Of a DNA stretch of 64,000 bases, positions 8,010 through 41,000 are shown piece after piece. Below the pieces are notes generated by a model. The model was given only the letters and a program-made list of their open reading frames with translations, made no database searches and was not told where the DNA came from. This stretch comes from Convolutriloba macropyga (lineage: Eukaryota), in contig NC_134477.1 of the NCBI RefSeq assembly GCF_964194025.1, forward strand, positions 12,710,001-12,774,000. The letters run 5' to 3'. Numbering within the stretch: the first letter of the stretch is position 1; every line of letters starts with the position of its first letter. The translations under genes were made by a program, and so were the position numbers.

Positions 8010-11000
8010 GGGGAAAGGCTACTCGGTAATTTACACAATGTTCTGACACCGCTTATCCACAAGTTTAGCCTAATTGTACACCAAATGAGGAAGAGGCAGA
8101 AAACTTTCAAAAATCTCACCTTTTGATAAAAAAATTAGTGTATGAATGAAATTTTCCTTCCAAATAAATTCACTTCGTAAAGTGAAAAATGCCAAATTAG
8201 TGGGCCAATGAGAACTGCCATCATTAAGATTAAAAGTAAGACAAACGAAAAAGGTCAAATATCAACAACAACAAACATTTACAAACAAAACTGAATGTAC
8301 ACTTTTTTTTGAAAAAGTTACATAATAACAAAGTCAAAAGAGCCTCAAATAAAACCTAAATTAAACAAATTAGTTTGTACTTCACAAGAGAGAACATGTG
8401 CCCAGTACTTGATGAGACTCAGTAACAAGTAGACAAAAGGAGCAAAAACGGCAAAATTAAAATTTACGATTATTTTATTGAAAACAAATAGTTTCAAAAA
8501 TTGAAAACATACAGATATCAATTTGAAACTTAAATGATGTTTATTTTCAGGAATAGCTCAAAGTGAAGACACTGTGACCTGTCATTGTCCAGCAAATGTC
8601 TTACGTCGACAAAAACGAACGACAAGAAAAACAAAAATTTTATTAAGTTTCTACGAAAACGGCGTCGAAGCCATTAAAACCATAACCTATTCCGTAAAGT
8701 AAGATATAATCAACTGCATCTTCTTTGAACACCAATAAAGATATTTGTGACCTCTGAGAAAGGCGACTAGGTAGAAAGTATTACAAAATGAAGGAAAAAC
8801 GAAAAAAGGGATTAGTTAAATAAAGTTTTGTTTTTTTTTTCAAAAGCAATCTTTTCAAACACAAAAAGGCTTCATCTAGCAATGGATATCAGTCAATTGT
8901 TTCCTTAGTTTATGCAAAGGAAGCCATTGAGATCTGCTTTTAGTCAGAATGTTTCATATGTCGACAAAAAGATCAATAAATAGAGCAAAAATATAAAATT
9001 AAATTATTTTTTTCTGAAAAGTGCAATCAAAGCAATTAAAACAATTAGTTACTAAAAACCCCATACATGTTCAATTCTTTAGACAAACACAACAGCAAAG
9101 TAGACAAAAACAACAGCAAAGTCCAATTTTCAAATACATATTGAACAAATTCGGTAGACAAAAACAACAGCAAAGTCCAATTTTCAAATTCATATTGAAA
9201 TGCATCAGCAAAATCCAACTTTAAAATACATCCAAGTAAAGAAAGCATTCAACTGTCAACTGAAGTCAGTAAAATAGGTTTCTATGTTGTTCTACAGGAA
9301 GTTGCTAAGACCTGCAATTATCCAAAATTTATCATACGACTACAAAAAGTAAGACAAATGAAGACAAAAGTCAAAAATCAAATTAATCTTATCCAAAAAA
9401 CCTGTATCGAAGCCGTTAAAAAAGGCGAAACTCTAAAAACACTAAATATAATCAATTTTCCCTGTCTTCAACACCAACAGTTTGGGAAAATTTAGAGCAT
9501 AAATCTTGGTCTCCTCGTGACTCAATCCTGGCACTCCGGTGAAGGCGCTTTCATTTCAGGCGACTAAGTCACTGAAGTGACTAAGATTTATATTTTAACA
9601 TATACCTAATTAAAACTGAAACCAAATTCCTTTATGTAGTAAACTGCTGTCAATAGAGCTTGGCTGCTTAAATTCGTGAAAGCAAGAGCAATTGAGATCA
9701 CGTAACTGAAAAAATCAAAAACAGTCAAGCAGTAGTTTTGCAAAAGCGCCTCCCACTACTAGACTGATTGCTTCAATTAACGTTTGAGAGACATTAAGAT
9801 TTTCTGAAACAAAAGATGGTTTTGCCTGACGCAAAATCATGAGCTTACTAGCCTCACAAGATGATTGTAGCGGCTGTCTTTTTTCATTTTCTTTACATAG
9901 GAGATTAGAAAAAACTTCCATAGGTCTATGTGCGAAATTGAGACCTGTTATTATCCAGACTACATGTGCGTCAAAAACAAACGACAAATTCAGACGAGAA
10001 ACCAAAAATTTCACTAAATTTCGCCTGGAAACGGCGTCAGAGCCGTTTAAACCATATTATATTCCGTAAAAATTAGGTTGTAACTAAGTGCGCGATTTTT
10101 GAACAACAATAATGAGATATGCGACCTCTGAAAAACAATACAAAATCACAAGCATTAAAAAGGGTACATTTTCATTTTTCAAAAGAAATAAAATTCAGAG
10201 ACATAAAAACATTAGTTTTCAAATGAATTATTTTGATAGTTTCTTTTGTTTCTAAAACCATTGAGATCTGTCACTATTCAGAATATGTCACACGTGGACA
10301 AAAAAAAAACAAAAAATTGACAAATTTCAAAAAAAGAATAAAATTTTTCTGAAAAAAACGTTTTTGAATTCTTTCAAACAATGAGCAATGCACAAAAAAC
10401 GGCGGCAAGGATAAATTGAGCTTTTCCTCAGTCCCAATAATTGGTATGCGACCTGTAAGTACTGAGACTAGGTAACCAGTAGACGAAAAAAACAGTAAAA
10501 TGCAAATTAGAAAAAAATCTGTACATAATTTTCCAGATCATTTGACTTCGGAATCAAGAAAAACATTACTTGTCAACTCAAATTAGTATACAGGGTCTTT
10601 TGTTCATTCATACAAAGCCGCAAAGATCCAAAGATCTGCTTTTATCCTGAGTTTCTCTTACGACTACAAAAACCACCGACAAATGTAGACAAAAACAGAA
10701 AATTTCATTGAATTCTTCTTGATGATTTTGAAGCAGTTAAAACTATAATCTGTTCACTAAAAGACTGATGGGTTCAATTCTCCCTTTTGTCTAAATGCCA
10801 TTGATGGGATATGTGACCTGTCAATAATATGACAAGATAAGAAATCTCGTTTAATAAAAACTGATGGCATCAAAGCAGAAAAACCATTACCGAAAACGTA
10901 AAGCAGTACTAAATTTTAAATATCAACCCATAAGAAAAACTATACAACCTGTCTTTGTTGACCTCAAGCTAAAATTTAAACATAAATAGACAAAAGTTTT

Positions 11001-26357: not shown

Positions 26358-28078
26358 ATGAGTTGTTTTCTCAGCCGAAGTGATTATTTGGGCAGCCAAT
26401 CGGGTTTATGCAATCAAGGTCAATTAGCCGACATTTCGGGATGTACAGTTACACTGAATTTGGCCACAAGAACAACAGCTCAGATAGCCACGGATGGCAT
26501 TATGTGCAGTTTGACAAGAAATGAACAGGTAATTAAGCCCGTTTTGTCCCAGCTTTTTACCACTTAAATTTGTTCTTCGTTCAATCATATTCAGCATAAA
26601 CAACTGTACTCGAACTAATTTTAAAGCTTTCTGGTAATTAGTTTTTTTTGTTCAATTTATGAGAAAAATATAGGAACTAAACCATAGCACAGAAAACATT
26701 TTTCATTTGCATTTTTGTGAAGAATAGAGTTTCTAAAATTTTCGATCTTCGATCACTAAGTTATTCTTTTTAAAGAATTCTTAAATTGGTTGTTTTCCTG
26801 GTTTAACGGCAATTTGAGGAAAAGGCTTTATTTCCATTTAACCATCTCAATTTAATTCTGTCACCACCTGGAAACTTTCATTTCCTGGAAATAGCATACC
26901 AAACCATACTTTAATTGATATTCAAAACACGTGAAAATATTTGCGTCAAAATTTTATCATTAATGCTAAAATGATACCTCATTTCCGGTATCTATTAATC
27001 TTTTCACGCCCATCAATTAATTCACACAAGACTCATTTCGTTTCAGGTCGAAAACAAGAATTGCGAATTCAACACGGACGTCTTAGCTAGTAGTTTGCAA
27101 AGCGTCCTGACACCTGCCTATGATTACCAAACATCAAAACTCATCTCTAACAACTCCGGCCGAGCAAATTCTCAATCACTGTACCATCAAACCAGCCGAC
27201 AAACACCCGAAGACACAGTCGCTTTCTCGTCTAAAATTCCGTCTCAAAAGTCTGGTACATTTATCAGAAGAAAACCTTTTCAGAGAGATTTCCAAAAGTC
27301 GGATACAATGTTTGGCACGTTTACAACGCATTCCACCAACACTATCCCCCATTCAAGAATTTCAGCCACATCGGGGTTCACCGAAAGCAACCACGCCAGA
27401 CTTCTCGCCAGAAATGGACCGCTGATTTTCCCGTTTGGGGAGGAAAACACGCTTGTGATTGACTTCACAGAAGCTAGAAAAGCAGATAAGAGTAAGGAAT
27501 TTTCCCGTGGACGACCTATGTGGATTTATAACAACATGAATCACGAAAGCGACGAAGAAGATAAAGAAAATTCAGCACCTCGCAAAAATTCGACAAAAGT
27601 CAACAGAAAAGCAGAGGACGTTTCGGCTTTGTCTCATCTAGCACCCGGATCAAACCCGGACCCGTTTAAGACGCAAAGCTTTTTAGCTCCAGGACGACCA
27701 AGCGCTTTCTGTCCAGTCAGAAAGGCGAACCGAACATTCTCTCCTACTGGAAGCGGCAAATCTTTCGAATCTTCGAGCAGTTTGGAAAATACTCAAAGCG
27801 GGTCGCAAAATGGTAGCCAAGAGAACGTTGGAAACTCCGAAAGACGAAGCCGACCTGGCCGACGACAGTACCGAAACGGCGACAACCAAAAACCAGGAAG
27901 AAACGTCAACAAACCCGTGAAAGCGCAAGGTCACATGAAGGTCGTTGGGTCAAGTTCCCCATCGTCACCCGATTTCAAGGTCGACAAAGCGCACCCAAAG
28001 TACAAAACCGAGAGGTGTGTCAACTTTCCGATGGGTCATTGCAAGTTTGGCGACAACTGTGCCTTTATTCATCAGTAA
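26358..28078 (+). CDS. CCCH zinc-finger RNA-binding protein (TIS11/ZFP36-like finger, single and C-terminal); join(26358..26528,27047..28078), ~400 aa
   Basis: The long ORF ends KYKTERCVNFPMGHCKFGDNCAFIHQ*, i.e. a KYKTE lead-in plus CX7CX5CX3H. The frame is open back to the acceptor tttcag|27047. An upstream ATG exon 26358-26528 ends GAACAG|gtaatt in matching phase 0. The first exon is less certain than the second. Confidence 0.82.
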
Positions 28079-29058
28079 CAAATTTACATAGACAATGGGT
28101 TCGATCCCCGGCAAGTGCCAAAACTTAGAAAAGCTCGATATGTTATTTCGACATTTAGAATGTTAGTTATAACATATTTAGTTTAAGTTTTCGTGTTTAG
28201 TAAAAATGTAAACGTATGTACACCTTTTGTCTTTATCTAGTCATTAACTTGCTGATTTATAACTTGCTGTTTATGATTTTTCATAACTTGATGCACAAAT
28301 TTGAAAGTTTTCAATTTCACTTAACCGATATTTGAAAAACTGTTGAAAAATTTTGGTGATACATTTTAAAGTATAATGTTCCAATGATTGTTCTCCGATA
28401 ATTCTCTGTAAATACCTTTCTTCGTGCAATCAACTAAACTAGTGTGAGCTGTTTTAACTACAAAATACACCTGTGTTATTTTGTTATTAACTGAGCTGTA
28501 ACCAGCTTGATATTATTAAAATCATTGCATTGTGTGTGTGTGTGATCATTTATAACTAAGTTAACTTAGTTTATAAATACTTTTTGTGGTCGTGACTTAA
28601 CTGACAACTTTTACTGAAACGTGTGTTCATTCAGATATTGAGTACTTAACGTGTGAACTTTTCATTACAACTTTGTTTTTGATTGTCTTGAAAGAGTAAT
28701 TCAAATTTTAGTAACAAGAATATTCTTTTTTTCCAAACATTACAACTTGTACATATAGCTACACTCTGCTTAAAAAAATACGAAATTTACACCGCAAAAT
28801 ATCTGCACATATAAATCTGCATACCTATGTTCGGTTGTATAGATTTAAGAAGAAAAAATCAAGGTTAATTGGAAGCGTGGAAAATTGAAAACTTTCGAAA
28901 AGAGTTAAAAAAAATCGGTGAACAATGCTAAATACAACTTAAACTGCACGTCTAATAGTTTACTTAAATATTGCTCGATCGGCTTGCTATTTAATTTACT
29001 CGAAGTTCTATACGGACCAAAACGTCTCTCTTCAAATTAATTTAAATCACCTGTTATC

Positions 29059-32000
29059 ATGGCCGATGATTCGAAACCTAGCGATAAACAGACACAACCG
29101 TCTGATTTCGAACAATGGCGTCAGCAGCACTCCCCATTTCGATCTAATGAGACTCCCAGTTTTTCGGCCACTAGAGGCACCAGCAGCAGAGCTAATCAGA
29201 GTGCTCAAACGTGGAAACAGAAAGCTATGGAACAGGAGAATGAAAGCGAATATTACAGGAAAGTTTTGTTGAAATTGTTTTTGAAATAAACATTGCTCAT
29301 TTGTTACGTTATTTTCCAGTTTGATTACACTCACAGAAAAGAATGGGAGTAATTACTGAGCTAAGTTAAAGCTAACCAAGGCATTATTAATTTTTAGTTT
29401 TGATTGATCAGTATTCAAAAAATCTATAAAAAAGATTAAAAAATAGCTCTGGTGGCACCAAAAACCATTAAACATCATGGATTGCAAAGTGGATAAAACC
29501 CCCAGGTTGAGGTGCCAGACCGAAAGTCGATATGTCCAGACCGTCCCAGACGGAAAGTGTCTATGTCCAGACCCTCCCAGACGGAAAGTGCCTATGTCCA
29601 GACTTTCGTGCGTTCAAAATTTTTCGTGCGTTCATCGTGCGTTCAAAACTCCCTATGTCCAGACTTTCGTGCGTTCAAAATGTTATATGACCAGACTTTA
29701 GTGCGTTCCAAATTAAAATTCCATTATACACAGGCTGCGATTTTACCTAATGCCATTTTACCCAATACCAACTAACCCAATGCTCTTTGGTCTTTTCGTT
29801 CAATTATCTGATTATAATTTAGCAGTCGTTATTATAAGGATGTTTTAAATTGTTTATATGGACAATATAATCCCATGTTCGGTTAAGATTGTTTCATATG
29901 AAGTCCCACGGGCATTGGGTATAATGGCATTGGGTAAAATGAAATAGGGTAAATTGTCCTGACACTATTATTAACATTCAGCAATCTGACATGTGTGTTG
30001 TTCGTTTTTCTCTCCAAACGAATGGGAAAAGTTCAGGTGTAGCTTCTCGTATAAGTTATGAATTGTTTTTCAATAGCCTTCTTCCTCTTGATGATTTTTT
30101 TAGGTTTTCCATCACCAATATGGGACTCTTATCGCTTGCTCTGTCTTTTGAAAACAAAAGAATCTATATTATCCAAAAAATCCTTGGCTTGGTAATTTGC
30201 GTTCGCACATAAATTTCCTAAGCTGATCATCTACATATTTCACTTAATTGTCTACCAAATGAGGAAGAGTTTAAAAAAATTAACATATCAACATATCATT
30301 CAACAAATTACAATATGAATAAAACAGTCTACCCTAGAGGGCCTATGAGACCTGTGACTATCATAATATGACTACCAAAAAAGACGGCGATAAAATCCAA
30401 ACATTTACAAATATTAATTACGACCAAAACTCGTTGTCCATTTTGTGAAAAAACTTATTAACCAAATCAAAATGGCATCAGATCAAAATTATACTAAGAG
30501 GATTAACCAGTAATTTATATAAAAAAATGAGACTTTTCCTCGATGGAACTTGGTAACAAGCCTACGAGAAATGAGCAAATCGGCAAAGTTTAGAAAAAAA
30601 ACCGCTTTCTTTGAAAAGAATTCATTTCAAACTGATTAGAAAGATTATGCATCAAATAAAATCATTGAGAAGTTCTTTAAAAACTACCTAGAGAGCGATT
30701 GAGACCTCTCATTATCCAGGGTATGTCATAAGATTGCAAGAAACGACAAATACAGGCAAAAAGGAAAAATTTGCACAACAAAATTTGAACGAAAAAAATT
30801 GCACGAAAACGATGTCCCACCCAATTGAACTCGAAGCTGTTCATTAAAAACATTGAAAATCATTGATTTTTTTCCAATGACGCGAGGGCCGCCCATTATT
30901 GTGATACAAAGAAAAGATAACAAAAACCTACAAAAACGGGCGAATATGCAAAAATCTCTAATATTGTGTGAAAACTGATTGTACCAAAAGACAAAGACCA
31001 TTTTAGACCAAAGACAGAAATTAAATCGTTATAAAAAGCAAAAAATAGTTCAATAGATAACAGTTGTGACCTGTCTATAGAAACGCTAAGCTACAAATTA
31101 ACAGACACAAGATTGGCATATCTCAAACATCCATTCTCTTTTAAAAAAAACAAATACTTTTAAAGTTCACTGCCAGCGTAAGCTTTCGATTAAAAGAGTA
31201 GACAGTTTATCTTACAACTTTCTAGAAAACTAATTGCCACTGTCATTAGTGAGACTAAATCTTAAGCCTATATTACATTATAGACTTAACATTAAAACAC
31301 AAAATTAAATACAAGCTGCACTAAAAAAATTCACAAACAACTTTACGAAATCACAGTTTTGAAGCCATTAAATTAAAAAATATATTACAATTTGTAAAAG
31401 TTTATAATATAAAACATAAAATGTGTTAAGCTCACATATGTATCTATAGGTGGCCACTGAGACAATTAATTATCCAATATTTGGCATACGACAACAAAAA
31501 TAACAACAAATAGAGGTTAAAAATAGAAAACCCAACGAAAATCGGCAAGAAAACGGTGTCGCAGCCCTTTAAACCTTATGTTATGAAAACAAAATGTATG
31601 TTCAGTTACCAATTTTTCGAAGCTTTTTTCAGTTGAATTGTTAGGTAATGTGACAATTTACCAAAGAAACAAAAATAACAGCAAAAATAGGACACTATTC
31701 GAAAAAATCAAAAAAATTGTGTCTGAAAAGTCGTAATTCTAAATACAAGAAAACTTTCTGTCAAAACACTTCGCCAAAAAATAGATTGTACTCTATAAGT
31801 AAGGAAGTTTTATTTGTATTTTGCTGAGAATAATCAAAAAGTTGACTGAAATAATTATAATAAATTACAGTTTCAAAAATCACTGAATTTTTCCTAAAAG
31901 AAATACTTTCAATGACAAAAGAGACATTAGGTAACAACCGAATGCATGGTACAGGCTAACTTACACCTCTTGAGGAAGCCATTTGGATCTTGAGTGGTTG

Positions 32001-35000
32001 AAATTAGTAATCAGACTGCAAAAAGAATAAAAATTGAAGGCAAAACACAAGATTTCAGTTGAAGTTTACAAAAATTCTTCCTCAAAGCCATAAAAAAATT
32101 CTTAAGTTCTCTGAATACAAGCTAAATCTATATTCGGCATTTTCGGAGTTGTCATTATTGAGGTCATGAACAAAAAACTTTGTCAGTAACTAGCATTCAA
32201 AAGACAAAAGCAAATTATTTTGAAAAAAGAAAGCACCAAAATATAAATTAAAAAACTTCTGATTGTAATAATCCATAACAATATCTAACCTAAAACCGAT
32301 CTTGCCGCGCGCCCAACAAACCACGCAAGTGTTCCAAGGGTTTGAGAATAAGACCAATTGTTGAGTGAAATTTGTCAAATATTAAAAAAACAACGATGTA
32401 TTTTTGTATAATCTGCAAGTTAAATCTGCAAAAAACGACAAAATTTTAATTCCAGAAAACTTTCAACGGTGAGCCTAGTTTAAACAAAGGCTCATTTCGA
32501 TGTTAAGTAGTCTTTGTCAAGGTTTCTAGGTCACTATGTCTGGCAAACTTTAACAAAGTGGACAAAAAAGCATACATTTTGCAATTTCTCACGAGAAAAG
32601 TTCGAATTTTGAAAATGTTATCAAATTTATAGCCAAAAAGCTTCAATCAGACAATTAAGCAACAATTTTGTATCTCTAAGGGTAACAATAACACTCTGCC
32701 GTTAAAAATTTCAACTTATTTTGACTTATATTAGCGAAATTGTGCCAAATTTTAGCAAAAACTACTGAAAATGTGAACAAAAACAGTCGAATGTTCACAA
32801 ATTTTTAAACCTCGATAACTCCCTGTAAAAAACGAAAATAAAAAAATCTTTTTAATTCCGTATTCTACGCTGGAAGGGCTTTTCAATGATACCAATCACA
32901 ACTCTCGACGATGAATATATTGATCGGCCAAAATTGTCTGAAAAAAAAAATCCCAGTTGAGTATATAGTTCCTCCCTCCCCACTAAAGTGGGGGTCGAAA
33001 CAATTATTTTTGCGAATGCAATTTTATCATTATTCGCTACTCGCAGTTCTGCCTTTTGTTTTAATTGTTATCATTTAAAACATACTAAGCTGACTAAGTT
33101 GATCAGTTTCATAGTTTCAATGGCGCATTAATTTTTTATTGCTTCTAGCTTTCTTGGTACTAGGCAGGTTGTACATTTTATTATTGATACATATTATTAT
33201 TATTAATATTTTTGTTATTGGAAAATAATTTTTGTAGGAAGAAATTGAACGAGACCAAGAGTGATTTGGTAACGTTGCAACAGGAGGCAGCCTCGTCTGA
33301 AATAGATCACGCTCGAGAGATAGCCGAGACACAACTCAGTTACGAAAAGGTACCATGACCTAAACAAAACCACTTCTGAGTTTAATAATTGGCAAATTTG
33401 CAAACATATCAATCACATGGCAAATTTTCGTTTTTCTTTGTGTATGTGATCCTAGGATTGAAATTTTGTAGTTGTAAGAGAGTGTAGATAAGGATTCAAT
33501 TACATAGTTCTAGACATTCAAGTTTGCCAAGTTTTTTGTATCTGTTTTAAGTTGCGGGAACAACCAACTCGTTTTGGCTGCGATAAGGACAAAAGTCATT
33601 GTTTTTTCAAGTTTCACTTCAAGTTTCAAGTTATTAACCAAAAATTGTGTATGCTAGACTTTTACTCGACTCAGAACTCTGATTTTAAATTCTCACTATA
33701 GGTCATAAAGTTTCAAAAAGTGCTCATTTAGAATTTATTGGTTTTCAACTCAGCCTAGGCATCACTGCGCTGCAAATTTATTAAAAACATCAAACTATAT
33801 GGCTCTTTGTTCTCTAGGATCTGAACGCGTTGAGGAAAGAAAATGTGGAAGGACTGGAGAGACTACACGAACAAAGGAGATCTGAACTGGAAGAAAGTTT
33901 GGATTTGAGAGATGAGATTGCCAGACTGGAAAATGGTTAATAAAGATATCCAACTTCACATTACAAACTGAGCTACTATCAAGTATTCCAAGTCAGTTTG
34001 CTCGTAGAAATAATTTTGGAAAGTTTTGGACTCATGAAAAAAATTACTGTATGTACAGCTGTTTGACCGTCGGCTATTTCAGCTATTGCAAATAACTTTA
34101 TCAAATTATCGGACTAAAAATAAACAAAAGTGAAGAGTGGAACTTGTAGTTAAAACTAAGTTGTCATGTAGTTCCTTTGGAATTGTTTTTGATTGCATAG
34201 CAAATCCAAAAGTGTCCACATCATCAAAGTATATGATAAGAAATGCAGAAAAAATCAACTTTAATTTTCAATTTTAATCATATTTCTAAAAATCAGCTGT
34301 ACAAAAGAGGAGACTTGGAAAAAAAATGCTGTTGAAAGAATCTCACAAACAAAAGATTTTGAAAAAAAATAGGAGAAAAGTTCGATGCAAAAACAATGGT
34401 CGATTTTGCCTTCTCATCAGATTTCTTTCCCAAAGCTGCAATTTAGGATTAAAATAAAACAGTTTATAAAGAGAACTAACTGACCCAGTTAGAACGAATT
34501 GCCCTGCAACGTCTGACTGGGATGTAAAGTAAAAAAGCCTTATTTTAAGTAGTAAACGGCCGCCAATTGAGGTCACATTCTTGAAACTTGGAATCAGCTA
34601 GCAATTTAGATCACGCAAAAAGCCAAAAAATAAAGACGTAAATGTCAATTGAAAAACCAAACACGGTCAAGCTAAAGTTTTGCACACCCACTACCACAAT
34701 TATTGACTCAATCGTAACTGGAGAGCAATAAAATGCTTGAAAAAAAAAACAAAATAACGGTTTTGCTTGAGGGCTTATAACGAAATTTTGACAGCATGTC
34801 AGGATAATTTTAACAGCAGCCTCGTTTCTTTTAAATTGAGGAACTAGAAAAGTGTCGGGTCAAAAACAACATGAGTAAATGAGAATTGGTCTGATCGGAA
34901 ATTAAGAAAAAAAACCATCCAGAAGATTACAAGAGCGATCTGAAAAATTATTCTAATTGGAAAAAATTAGACAATAATTCAAGATTTCTAGAACTAACAC

Positions 35001-38000
35001 ATAATTGAGAAACCTTCATTTAGAATAAATCTTCTAAAACAAAAAAAACGACAAAAATTGTCTTAAAAAATGACATATTATTAGTGTGCCTCTCTGAGCT
35101 CCAAGTTCTTTTTGCAATAAAAAACTCTTAAAGCGATGAAATGTTTTGTTCTTAAACTTGAAAATGACAAAAAATAGACAAAACCGTCAACAAATCTGTT
35201 TCTCCTCACCAAATTTAAAACCCAAATAAAAGGGCATGAACAATATATTCAGATTTGCACAAAATATCATTTTGAGATTATTTCAAACAGGTTGTTAAAA
35301 TTGCTATACGCAAAATTGACGCCTGTAATTAGAAAAATTGCGCAAATTTTTTGTAAGTTGGTTATTGTGCATTAAAGACACGCTGTATTTTAAAATCAAT
35401 TGCATTTTTCTATAATTAAATTATTTCGAAAATAATTTGAAGAAACTGCACCACATCTTCAACTCTTTGTGTCCTGATCTTCTCTACTTGAATCATGATC
35501 TTTGACAACTTACGGCATTTCTATATAAATGCAGATTATGCACACATTAACATGAACAAAATTCAACTAAATGTTATAGCTAATTACTTTCATTCTATCT
35601 ATCTCCATTCAGTTATATATGATTACGTACAACTATGCCGACGTAATACTATGCCGATTATAAGAGTGCCGAAAATTTATTCAATTTTTCACCCGATAAA
35701 TTTCGAAACTGCTATTACCAATTCATTATGAATTAAATGCTAACCGAATAACGTTTTCAAAGCAACTAGGGCACGCTGGTCAGTATTCGGTTGTGATAGA
35801 TTCATATCAAGTCCCACGGGCCGCTGAGGCATGGCCGTGGCCCGCAATTATCATTGTTTGTTTTAAATATTTCTCCCTCCAATTATCTTGTCCTGATAAA
35901 TAATAAAATCCAAAATCTCACAACTTCATTGTGATTGGGTCAGAAATTTTGCGCTCATTTCAGTTAAAGTGATTTGATTGGTTTAGAAATTTATCGGGAG
36001 AAAAAATGAATATATTTTCGGCACTCTTATAATCGGCATAGTATTACGTCGGCATAGTTGAACGTCACCAACTTAAGTAGTACAATAAGCTTAACTTAGG
36101 GCGGGCTACAAGTTATTTAATTTTGCATGCGCGTAATGTAAATGATTGGTATACAAATTAGTGCGAATGTTAGCGAAGCGATTTGGGGAATTAATCGCCG
36201 ATTTTCGCAACGATTTTGCCGCCAGAATTGGCTGCCGAGATTAGCGACGAAGAAAGACAATTTGGTCGGCGATATTCGCATTGTCGCTGATCTTGGGCAA
36301 AATTGCTACGAAAAACCAAGAAATTCCAGTTGTTTGCTTCTTATTTAGGCAGTAGTAAGAGTTTTTGCTCAAAAACGAAGAGCAGGCTTTTCGTTAGTTC
36401 AGTGATTTAATTATCTATGCCATCATTGCTATCCTCAAGTAATCTGATAGCAACACTTAGCTCTTCAGAGACTTATGTTAGACTGCCCAGATGGAGGTTC
36501 CAAAGTCTATTGGCGTAAGATAAGGAAAGCGTAGTCATCATGCTCAAGTTTTTTTTTTGAGTGACGTGTTTGTGCTGAGTGAATAACGTGAAATCCAATT
36601 CAACAAAAGTTTACATCTAGACCATATCAACAAAAAACGTCTATGTCCAAACTTCCGTGCGTTGAAAAAAATTTGTGCGTTCTTCATGCTATGAAAAGTG
36701 CGCATATCCACATTTTCTTGTGCTCATTTATACATCCAGACAGTGACCGCGTAACATTGAACGCTCAACAAACAACAATGAACGCGTTCTTTTGAACTGG
36801 ACATACTCACTTTTGGTCTTGGTCAGCCTGGATATATAGAGTTTTGTCCGAGAGGGTAGTGCTTGCGCGCTTAGTTTATGCCAATATGAAAATTTACAAA
36901 AATAAGCACTTCAAATGAAAAACTTGAAAGTATGGTTAATCAGTTGTGTCTCGTATTTACGAATAGTAAATAAAGGTACACTTTATCCTAGTTAGTTGCT
37001 CATACGTCTTCACGATAGAAAATGCTAAAAGTTCAATTGAAGTTTATGATTTTTGTCGTGGTCGATAACACGGGTCAAAAGAATTCAATAAATTGAATTT
37101 TAAATTAAAATTGGATCTGAAATTATACTAAAATTAGCACGTATTTATAGTACATATCTATGCAAAAAGATACAGAGAAAATTTAGATTACCTCAAAATA
37201 TTATACTTGATTGACATGTGAATGATCACCTGGAGTGAACCATCATAAATTTAGAGCTTCAAAGTCAACCTCAACCTTCAGAACCCACATTACCCACAGG
37301 GCAACATCCTGAAGAAACAACCCACTCCCAACCCCATCAACGACCTGTCATCTTCGATTCCGAGTTACGTCAATTACTCACAACCTGTGACATGATCAAT
37401 TCATCGCTTCAACAACAACATCAACAAATGAGTGAAAATGCTAATCAGAGGTCAAAAGAGCAGACTGATGAAGAGTTGAAGCGATTGAGAGATAAAGTTC
37501 AAAGTTAGTTGGGACAGATTTGGATTAAAACTTTGGTACTATAAATGTATAAAAACATAATTTTCGGAATATATTTCAATAAGCACGGTTGAAGAGAACT
37601 AATCAAGGTTTCTTAATTTTCCTTTTTTTTCTCGATTTATTGAATTGAATTGAGTAGCAACATAGACATGATAAATTACACTTCATATGAAGTCACTTAG
37701 ACATTAAAACGTTACAATGTCCATTTTTTTGCTCATTTTTCCTTAAAATATTAATCTAATCTACTTTGTATTTGAGGTCTGATTTCTATTATAGAGATAA
37801 ATTGAGATATATCATTACTAACAGCAGTGAGTCACGGTAAAGTATTTTTGTTTTGAGCAAAAAAAATAATGGCAGTTTTAAACCATAAGCCGTACTGTTT
37901 TCTCAATAGCTTGTGATGTCGGTGTAAATAAGCACAAATTAGTCGCTCTGCGCTCTGAAAAGCTCCATTAAATTGAAGAAAAAGTATTTTGATAATATAA

Positions 38001-41000
38001 TGCAGTTCGATAACGCCAAAGGAAATAATTAGGAATCGATTCGTAATTTCATAATTTCGATTTTGTAATTTTTTAAGGTCCAGAATCGATTCAGAACATT
38101 TTTAAGGTCTAGAAGAGAACTTGAACTCGCGAGCTCAAAGAGACGAACACAATGAGCATTCTTCAAACACAGCTGCAACTACTGCTGCGGCTATCAGCCA
38201 AAGTCAACTCCAGTTCTCAACACTGTTGGAGAAAACAATTGCCGATCTCACCCAGAAAACCCACGTGGATGAGAAAATAGGCCAAATGGAAAGGTCAGTA
38301 CTAATAAGCGCTCAATAATGACTGAATAGTGAGCGTTTGAAGAAGCTATTGCTTAAAACCATCGAAAAAAGTCGTTGAGTTTTTGATGTCGAGATCTCGA
38401 CTTATTGCAGACTCCGGGCCGAGTCGTCAGCCAAACATCGTAATATAGCTATTATAGCGGCGAAATTACAAATTTTAGCGGCGAAATTACAAATTTTAGC
38501 GGCGAAATTACAAATTTTAGCGGCGAAATTACAAATCTTCTGCAAATTTTAGCGGCGAAACTATGCCAACTTCATCATTAATACTAAGCAGTGAAAAAAT
38601 CATATTTTGTCATTGAATGTGGTGAATATATCCTTTTTACCCTTTTAAAATTTAGGGTTGAGGATTCTCATGTACGGTATAAAAATGTATCCAAATTTAT
38701 TTGAATGGAAACTTCGTTAGTTATTAATATACAATTTAGTTTATTTTTACTATGAACAGGTACGCCCAAATGAGCCAAGAACAGGTCAGCTTGCTCAGAG
38801 GCAGATTGCAAGACGAAAAGGAAGAAAGAGAGAGCACACGTGAACAGATCAACAAACTCACTAGATGCATGAACAGCAAAATTCAGAGTGAAAAGTTAGT
38901 ATAAACACTGATCGAGGTATAGTTAGTCCCACAAAAAATCAACACAAGCGAATGTTCAAAAAATAATTCAGACACGCAAATGAGCATCATAATTGCAGAC
39001 GTTGGATTTAATTAAATTTGAATTTTGACCCGTTAAAAGTTCGCTTGATAGCGCTGCAACTTAATGAGACTAACTATGCCCCGAAAGAGTGAGCATGTTC
39101 AAAATCTTACATGATGATACATGCATTTTAGTGGCAAAATTTGAGTAAGATCAGACCCGTCCAGATTCTAGTCGAATTAATTGAAAAGTTTTGACTTTCT
39201 AGATCTTTCAAGATAGTCTTTAGGAAAGCATCAGTAATCTCTATACGAAGCTAGCTAGAGATTTAAAAGATAACTGTCTTTTTTAAAGAAAAAAGCAAGT
39301 TTTTAGAGCGAAAAACCATGAGATGATGATACCTCAAGTACCTTAAGATGGCAACTGTTCACATGGATTTATAAAGAGTTCAGAGTATTGAAAAAGATAG
39401 AATACCAGTGCTGCGAACATAATTTGTATCGATGTATTTTTTTCCAAAACGGGTATCTTGCAAAAATTATTTAAGTTAAACAACGGCCATCTTGAAATAT
39501 CTTCCAAAATCTTGTGAGATAATACGAAAAAACCAATTGTATGTTTTTGACTGAGGACCATGGAGAACTCGGATTAGACTTGACATCGTGTTTAGAGATA
39601 AGACTTCATATCAATGAAGAGATTTTGACGAAGAGTATTTTGGAAATGCTACGCCTACCCCAAATTGCACATGAAAAACTATAAATTTCGCAAACTTCCC
39701 GAAAGAGTTGCAAGGAATCTAAACTAGTCTTTTTGATCAAAGAAAATGTTTTTCAGCTGCAAAATTTGTCTCTGCTAGGACAGAAATTGTATCCTGTTCT
39801 ACTTTTCTTGCTCCAAATCTCCTGTTCTCGGGAATCTAGAACACGAAAAGTTTTCGCAGACAAAAAACAATATCTATGATCAAAAAGCAAGTTTAGATTC
39901 CTGACAATATATACGGGAAAGTTGCATTTTTTTTCAGTTTTTCTTTACTATGAAATTTATGAAACCCATATAATAATCTCGGAATTAAAATTTTTAAATC
40001 AACCAGATCTATATTTACTAGTAGATAAAAGGCAGAGAAACATTTCCCATAATTCAAACTATTTCAATGTTTTCATAAATCACCTCCAAATTTAGCAAAT
40101 TATATGAAACACAAACAAATTTACTGAGAAAGAGCAAACTATTTTTTATGAGTTCAGACTGCTGCACTGGAATTTAAGAAGAGTTCAACGGAATTAGTAA
40201 TCGCCTATACGATATTCTTGGTACTGAGAACACTAAAATTTTGACATTTTAACTCAATAATGGAGAGATCAATATGACAGACAGCATCAACTAATAAAGG
40301 CACCAAATGAGATGTTAAGTTGCCTCCTTTAGACAACAAAAAAATTGAATATGTACACATTGTCAAAAAAAGATGTTTCCTTTTAATTTTTAAACTCCCT
40401 TTTCAGAATAAACTCAAAGCGCTTGTTCTGCGATGAATAGAATTAGCGTATATGCGCATGAGTTTTGACTCAAGTAAAAATACAAACATATAAGAAGATT
40501 AAAACTAGAATATCGTCGAAAAAAAATGACTTATTCTTTAAATGATTTCTAAAGAAAAAAATGGAAACTCTGTAATTAAAATTGATGATAAACTTATCGA
40601 GTAAAAAAGTATCTTTTTTTAATGCAGATATATACTGAACGGCGAAAGTAAGTTAGCACCCCTATTTTCACAGAGTGAAAAAAAAATCATTTTTTGAGGC
40701 ATTATTATTCCAAATTCAAATCACATTTTGAAGTCAATTTTTCCACCATTGATCCCCTACGCTAGCCTTCTGAACTAATTACAAAAATCAGATAGAATGC
40801 AACATTCACCTACCAGAAACGATAGTGTAAATTTGATGAATTACATCAAAATTTTACCTTAAAAACAAGTTAGCAAGAAAAGATTACAATTTATTCACAC
40901 TTTTTCTCTCTCTAATGTTCAACACAAGTGCAAACTTAGTCATAGTTGTTGAACTAAGCTAAAAATATATCACATCTTGTGACAAGTTTTTCTTTACTGT

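Follow-up and report, generated by a model that had tools for sequence, protein, structure and literature searches.

Introduction

Introns with GA and GG donors have been described in the copepod Eurytemora affinis (Robertson 2017, PMC5714493), and GA-AG introns in the appendicularian Oikopleura dioica (Frey & Pucker 2020, PMC7072748); in the GA donors of both species the AG that ends the exon is obligate and an A occupies position +3 (PMC5714493, PMC7072748). The GA donors of human FGFR1-3, as far as these two papers relate the original work, are served by the major spliceosome, and their use depends on a canonical site 6 nucleotides (nt) upstream and belongs to alternative splicing (Brackenridge et al. 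2003, cited in PMC5714493, PMC7072748). Here, we describe a candidate GA-AG intron in an acoel: the first intron of a coiled-coil gene of Convolutriloba macropyga, lying in a 64,000-nt stretch of contig NC_134477.1 (12,710,001-12,774,000, + strand), which is called the window below and to whose positions all coordinates refer unless a contig is named. From the letters of the site and the way they score, we consider it probable that this intron is spliced as GA-AG, from 29259 to 33237.

Intron 1 of the coiled-coil gene would agree with the introns of E. affinis and O. dioica in its G-A at +1/+2, the AG at the exon end, the A in position +3, an AG acceptor of the ordinary kind and, presumably, removal by the major spliceosome. 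The GA introns of these two animals are missed by predictors limited to GT and GC. They are backed by RNA-seq, whereas the acoel intron is known from DNA sequence alone. A literature search found no papers on non-GT donors in acoels.

Materials and methods

Relatives of the gene were located with the neighbouring CCCH zinc-finger open reading frame (ORF; 27095-28075) as query on ENA assemblies, which gave the contigs L001, L002 and L003. L001, from a separate ENA assembly, is 92-96% identical to the window, i.e., 4-8% diverged, while L002 and L003 come from other acoel species, with CCCH proteins that are 44% and 36% identical to that of the window, respectively. The coiled-coil gene adjoins the CCCH gene on the contigs of all three.

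Two run searches returned five sequencing runs of one study, four of which were compared with 28700-33700. Word depth was about 20-90 and even across unique stretches of exon and intron, and rose to between 1e4 and 6e5 across repeats. Since depth was even over exon and intron alike, these four runs are DNA. Splice donors were scored with a matrix made from 11 GT donors of the window, with positions +1/+2 excluded. The coiled-coil gene contributed seven of these donors; the other four belong to the genes for myosin light chain, GATA and lipase.

Results

Joining nine open stretches of the window gives a clean ORF of 654 amino acids (aa), of which the first three exons concern the intron under study.

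29059-29258, + strand: exon 1, coding part, from ATG 29059 to TAT TAC AG; 66 codons and 2 bases; based on ORF and frame, homology to L003, and the ratio of non-synonymous to synonymous substitution rates (dN/dS)
33238-33349, + strand: exon 2, G AAG AAA TTG ... GAA AAG, with donor AAG/GTACCA; orthologous exon in L002 and L003
33818-33935, + strand: exon 3, with donor ATG/GTTAAT; based on reading frame and comparison with L001 and L002

The join between exons 1 and 2 could be judged from L003, in which exons 1-3 form a single open exon (ORF L003:7641-8075, ATG 7701, donor TTGG/GTAAGT at 8047). Residues 17-119 of the model align to this ORF (tblastn, E = 2e-11), with WKQKAMEQENESEYYRKKLNETKSDLVT lying opposite WQHNSIQLEKEVEFYRNRFNDARTCLVT of L003, and the alignment stays gap-free across EYYR/KKLNE, over more than 20 residues to each side. 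Exon 1 alone matches L003 (E = 7e-5); aligned in the reverse direction, the match stops at 29259. Because the intron-free orthologue aligns without a gap across the join, the join is correct: judging by this alignment, exon 1 is part of the gene and connects directly to exon 2 at the protein level. An earlier note on this DNA, made from the letters alone, had proposed such a seamless coiled coil, and the L003 protein confirms it. Introns 1 and 2 are absent from L003, which retains the phase-1 intron after exon 3 with a GTAAGT donor; in L001 intron 1 is present and collinear.

Moreover, exon 1 evolves as coding sequence. Between the window and L001 it shows, in the proposed frame, 8 synonymous and 8 non-synonymous differences (dN/dS 0.22, p = 0.004), and the other two frames give ratios of 0.67 and 0.86. 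Exon 2 carries 3 synonymous and 1 non-synonymous difference (D>E; dN/dS 0.08, p = 0.028), and exons 1-3 together carry 12 and 9 (dN/dS 0.18, p = 1.6e-4). By these ratios exon 1 is under purifying selection, and of its three frames the proposed one alone shows this.

The L003 alignment therefore sets aside a wrong first exon, a hidden middle exon and a trans-spliced start at exon 2. A wrong gene model would make exon 1 a separate, unspliced ORF of 76 aa (read through, its frame meets a stop at 29287), or would have another first or middle exon, for example a trans-spliced leader, feed exon 2. Some observations speak for it: the 76-aa ORF stays in frame in L001, because the indel there is of 3 nt; the L002 orthologue seemingly starts at an ATG inside its exon-2 equivalent, with no exon 1 seen; and spliced leader (SL) trans-splicing is common in the acoel S. 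roscoffensis, where it affects about 30% of genes (PMC9911081). Yet L003 carries exons 1-3 within one exon, and exons 2 and 3 of the window are under selection although they have no ATG. The intermediate exon that the earlier note had allowed for found no credible candidate either, as a scan for one returned a single weak stretch of 29 nt, within a repeat. Between 28079 and 33237, no alternative ATG-bearing first exon with a GT donor scored above 1 bit, and the published S. roscoffensis spliced leader is absent from the window. A wrong gene model is close to refuted, and we would be very surprised to see it return.

The A at +2 of the donor (29260) was then compared across DNA sources. Contigs from runs X1 and X2 show zero differences from the window over 29134-29433, and the X5 contig, with which L001 shares variants, has 8 single-nucleotide polymorphisms and a 3-nt deletion at 29266, with no change at 29259-29264. 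L001 reads TACAG/GAAAGT, and its acceptor is tttttgtag/GAAG. The earlier note had allowed that 29260 might be an assembly error for T. The A is found, however, in three DNA runs (X1, X2 and X5, representing at least two samples) and in the second, diverged assembly, and nothing was found in favour of either an error or a private null allele, so that at the DNA level both are refuted and keep practically no probability. The A at +2 is genuine and old, being present in two lineages that differ at about 14% of the synonymous sites of exons 1-3; both lineages have kept a working exon 1 while carrying it. In run X4 (sample S2), no contig of at least 95% identity spans most of exon 1 (29034-29200), with the flanks covered; a deletion, an effect of filtering or a third allele of greater divergence could account for this.

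With the join and the A in place, the choice of splice sites turns on the following elements.

29259-29264, + strand: proposed GA donor CAG/GAAAGT (G 29259, A 29260); consensus donor everywhere except +2
29263-29268, + strand: competing GT donor AAA/GTTTTG; phase 0, in frame only with an exon start at 33242
29259-33237, + strand: intron 1 if spliced as GA-AG, 3,979 nt, mostly high-copy repeats
33224-33237, + strand: aataatttttgTAG, the T-rich tract and the TAG that form the acceptor of intron 1; same letters in L001 and the X2 and X5 contigs
33240-33241, + strand: second AG (gGAAG/AAA), the acceptor that the GT donor requires; the TAG stands 4 nt upstream

The letters, coordinates and frames of the earlier note proved correct throughout (exon 1 TAT TAC AG/GAAAGT; acceptor tttttgTAG ending at 33237). 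An AG acceptor is present behind a pyrimidine-rich tract, aataatttttgTAG/G; exon 2, when started at 33238, is open only as G AAG AAA TTG; and the GT at 29263, which doubles as positions +5/+6 of the GA donor, where the consensus has GT, is in phase 0, with the GTs at 29268 and 29277 in phase 2. When the four pairings of two donors and two acceptors were translated, only GA 29259 with 33238 and GT 29263 with 33242 stayed open, and both encode the identical protein ...ESEYYRKKLNETKSDL (EYYRKKLNETK). Exon 2 consequently does not strictly need the phase-2 donor that the earlier note had called for, since GT 29263 with 33242 is in frame as well; in the same way, the stop expected from GT 29263 arises when it is joined to 33238, but not when it is joined to 33242. 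The predicted mRNA junction is ...TATTACAG^GAAGAAATTG for GA-AG and ...TACAGGAAA^AAATTGAAC for the shifted GT-AG pair. One base, the third of the first Lys codon after Arg, sets these mRNAs apart (AGG AAG AAA in the former, AGG AAA AAA in the latter). Among metagenome contigs, the spliced junction of either reading had 0 matches.

Protein comparison cannot separate the two pairings, and splice sites were therefore scored. The GA site CAG/GAAAGT reaches +5.8 bits, on a par with the strongest real donors, whereas the GT site AAA/GTTTTG, which is without the consensus A (+4), G (+5) and T (+6), falls to -2.8 bits, under all 11 GT donors of the window. At the 3' end, a GA-AG intron would use the first AG behind the T-rich tract (TAG, 33235-37). 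A GT-AG intron would have to bypass this TAG, directly behind the tract, for the AAG 4 nt on, and none of the other window acceptors (0/8) has an AG between -17 and -3 nearer than -14. The first AG past the branch site is normally used, and TAG is preferred to AAG. As scored, donor and acceptor both favour GA, several hundred-fold in total.

A canonical GT-AG intron shifted by 4 nt (donor AGG AAA/GTTTTG at 29263, acceptor gtaggAAG/AAA, exon 2 from 33242) deserves to be taken seriously, since it is in frame, leaves the protein identical and obeys the general GT/AG rule. Donors in the window are loosely conserved (e.g., GTACCA, GTATAG), and AAG serves as the acceptor of exons 5 and 8 and, in L001, of exon 3. 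In human donors mutated at +1 or +2, a GT at +5/+6 sometimes becomes a cryptic donor, a use that this arrangement matches. Besides the weak donor and the bypassed TAG, however, joining GT 29263 to that TAG produces a frameshift and a stop, and the perfect CAG/G.AAGT consensus around 29259 would have to be a coincidence. We regard the shifted GT-AG intron as unlikely, though well above the other alternatives. Both pairings might also be used side by side, or in other registers or as regulated alternatives, with some transcripts perhaps unproductive (GT 29263 with 33238 leads to a stop), as two donors 4 nt apart and two acceptors 4 nt apart would compete; purifying selection on exon 1 implies that a productive product is made, and we hold mixed use to be improbable.

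Several points weigh against a cut at GA. The GT-AG pair shifted by 4 nt encodes the same protein, and the other seven introns of the gene, together with four more rebuilt in the window, all begin with GT. To our knowledge, A at +2 blocks splicing in nearly all spliceosomes that have been studied. The matrices used are crude and built from few sites (n = 11 donors, n = 8 acceptors). No RNA supports the junction, the runs returned by both run searches being DNA only. Finally, the ends of intron 1 are unpaired: their best duplex (-11.4 kcal/mol, z = -0.6) resembles those of shuffled sequences and of other parts of the intron. The GA-AG interpretation of the earlier note, which had overlooked the shifted GT-AG pair, is supported in part, by the join, the genuine A, the selection on exon 1 and the better site scores; on balance, GA-AG at 29259-33237 remains the probable reading.

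Non-GT donors were also seen in a relative. In L002, one GG intron (CAG/GGATGG ... aatcag/GAT, L002:11826-12302) lies at the position of window intron 2, and a second (TAG/GGACCA ... aatgtag/AC) at L002:15673-16104. A five-exon model built on both introns keeps an open frame, and its alignment with the window protein is continuous over each of the two junctions; as modelled, the L002 orthologue needs both GG donors to preserve the conserved protein. The ends of these GG introns are strongly paired (-23.3 and -22.7 kcal/mol, z = -2.8 and -4.5), unlike those of GT introns in L002 and in the window. The broader suggestion of the earlier note, that this genome may splice GA donors, gains from a relative whose orthologue needs non-GT donors. 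In the window, no other non-GT donor stands at the end of a long ORF.

The L002 gene seemingly starts at an ATG (L002:11751) that lies opposite Leu80 of the window protein; an in-frame TGA precedes this ATG by four codons (region L002:11700-11830). A search of the 700 nt that follow the CCCH gene of L002 for an equivalent of exon 1 yielded only a chance-like match of 11 aa, in non-coding-looking sequence. Given the absence of intron 1 in L003 and the lack of a visible exon 1 in L002, either gain or loss of intron 1 would fit. Intron 5 lies 4 nt more 5' in L002 (15673, phase 1) than in the window (38294, phase 2), if the gap-free alignment is right, and the offset could reflect intron sliding or two independent insertions.

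At 3,979 nt and with several different repeats, intron 1 is not one short element bounded by terminal inverted repeats and a target-site duplication. Its two borders share only the 5-nt AGGAA, three letters of which belong to the splice consensus, and this is not above chance. It carries a 31-nt tandem repeat at 29512-29716, and other elements occupy 32708-33041, within intron 1, and 33543-33700, in the early part of intron 2. In the DNA runs their word depths are 1e4 to 6e5, which marks them as very high-copy repeats.

The remaining exons of the coiled-coil gene are the following.

37255-37503, + strand: exon 4; acceptor choice confirmed by L002 (E-L at the exon start)
38107-38293, + strand: exon 5; based on frame and comparison with L002
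38760-38894, + strand: exon 6; based on frame and comparison with L002
44713-44949, + strand: exon 7; based on frame and comparison with L002
45817-46039, + strand: exon 8; based on frame and comparison with L002
47919-48422, + strand: exon 9 with the stop codon; based on frame and comparison with L002

Introns 2-8 are all GT-AG, with donors GTACCA, GTTAAT, GTTAGT (three times), GTCAGT and GTATGT. The usual donor in the window is GTTAGT or GTTAGA, with T at +3, and not GTAAGT (16990, 37504, 38895, 46040, and 60994 on the - strand). The acceptor of exon 3 (33816-33817) is TAG in the window and AAG in L001 (about 16424); AAG acceptors serve exons 5 and 8 as well.

The 654-aa protein is a generic coiled coil: Pfam gave no significant match, and the ESM Atlas only weak ones to mixed coiled-coil families. 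The exon 1 peptide had 0 HMMER matches among 1.8 billion cluster representatives, and the sole match to exon 9 was the genomic ORF itself, so that neither search returned a protein derived from a transcript. The other ORFs of the window had no Pfam match. Upstream, on the same strand, the CCCH zinc-finger gene (26999-28078) ends 980 nt before exon 1. The order of the CCCH and coiled-coil genes is kept in 3 of the 3 other assemblies, a conserved synteny despite CCCH proteins only 36-44% identical to that of the window.

Discussion

The mechanism that we propose is that of an ordinary U2-type intron, cut as AG/GA...AG/G at 29259-33237. On textbook pairing rules, the donor CAG/GAAAGU would pair with the 5' end of U1 small nuclear RNA (snRNA) at 8 of 9 positions, and the ACAGAG box of U6 would pair through +4 to +6 (AGU), while the first AG behind the T-rich tract (TAG, 33235-37) would serve as acceptor. 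The catalytic centre would then accept A at +2, with ordinary U1/U6 recognition resting on the eight matching positions and not on structure-assisted pairing. We infer the exact cut sites, the snRNA pairings and the tolerance for A at +2 from the letters at the two borders and these rules. An Rfam scan of the window gave no hits at all, and hence no U1 or U6 snRNA genes. A U12-type intron was considered and rejected, as the donor is GAAAGTTTTG and not /RTATCCTT, and no TCCTTAAC branch site occurs in the last 60 nt.

More tentatively, the major spliceosome of this acoel could accept A at +2 of an otherwise consensus donor whose intron ends are unpaired, with relaxed +2 being general to the lineage, a proposal to which we give slightly less than an even chance. 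If it is true, this would be a third animal lineage with relaxed +2, beside the copepod and the appendicularian, and such relaxation would not be special to hairpin-closed, transposon-derived introns. The unpaired ends and the full consensus around the A bear on whether tolerance at +2 belongs to the spliceosome itself or to intron structure. Moreover, if the cut is made at GA, gene finders limited to GT and GC would drop exon 1 of this gene and of many other acoel genes, and the gene sets from which the position of Xenacoelomorpha in the animal tree is worked out would be biased by the loss. Intron 1 is a single unproven junction, and its value is that of a clean test case without hairpin ends.

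In comparison with other known donors, intron 1 would share with human FGFR1-3, as these genes are described in the papers cited above, a GA 5' splice site and the presumed use of the major spliceosome; unlike them, it has no GT upstream, its only GT lying 4 nt downstream. A consensus donor that has been disabled and is followed by a GT 4 nt on is the geometry of the cryptic +5/+6 GT sites used after human donor mutation, and it is the shifted GT-AG pair that would resemble them. The known cases insert 4 nt and shift the frame, whereas here the acceptor, too, would have to move by 4 nt, beyond a better TAG. The GG introns of L002 belong to the same clade and share with the probable GA-AG intron a non-T at +2, an exon-end AG and a lineage-specific intron position. 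They differ in that their donors match the consensus poorly (GGATGG, GGACCA) and their ends form stems of about -23 kcal/mol, whereas intron 1 of the window is an unpaired, 3,979-nt patchwork of repeats whose donor is otherwise of full consensus.

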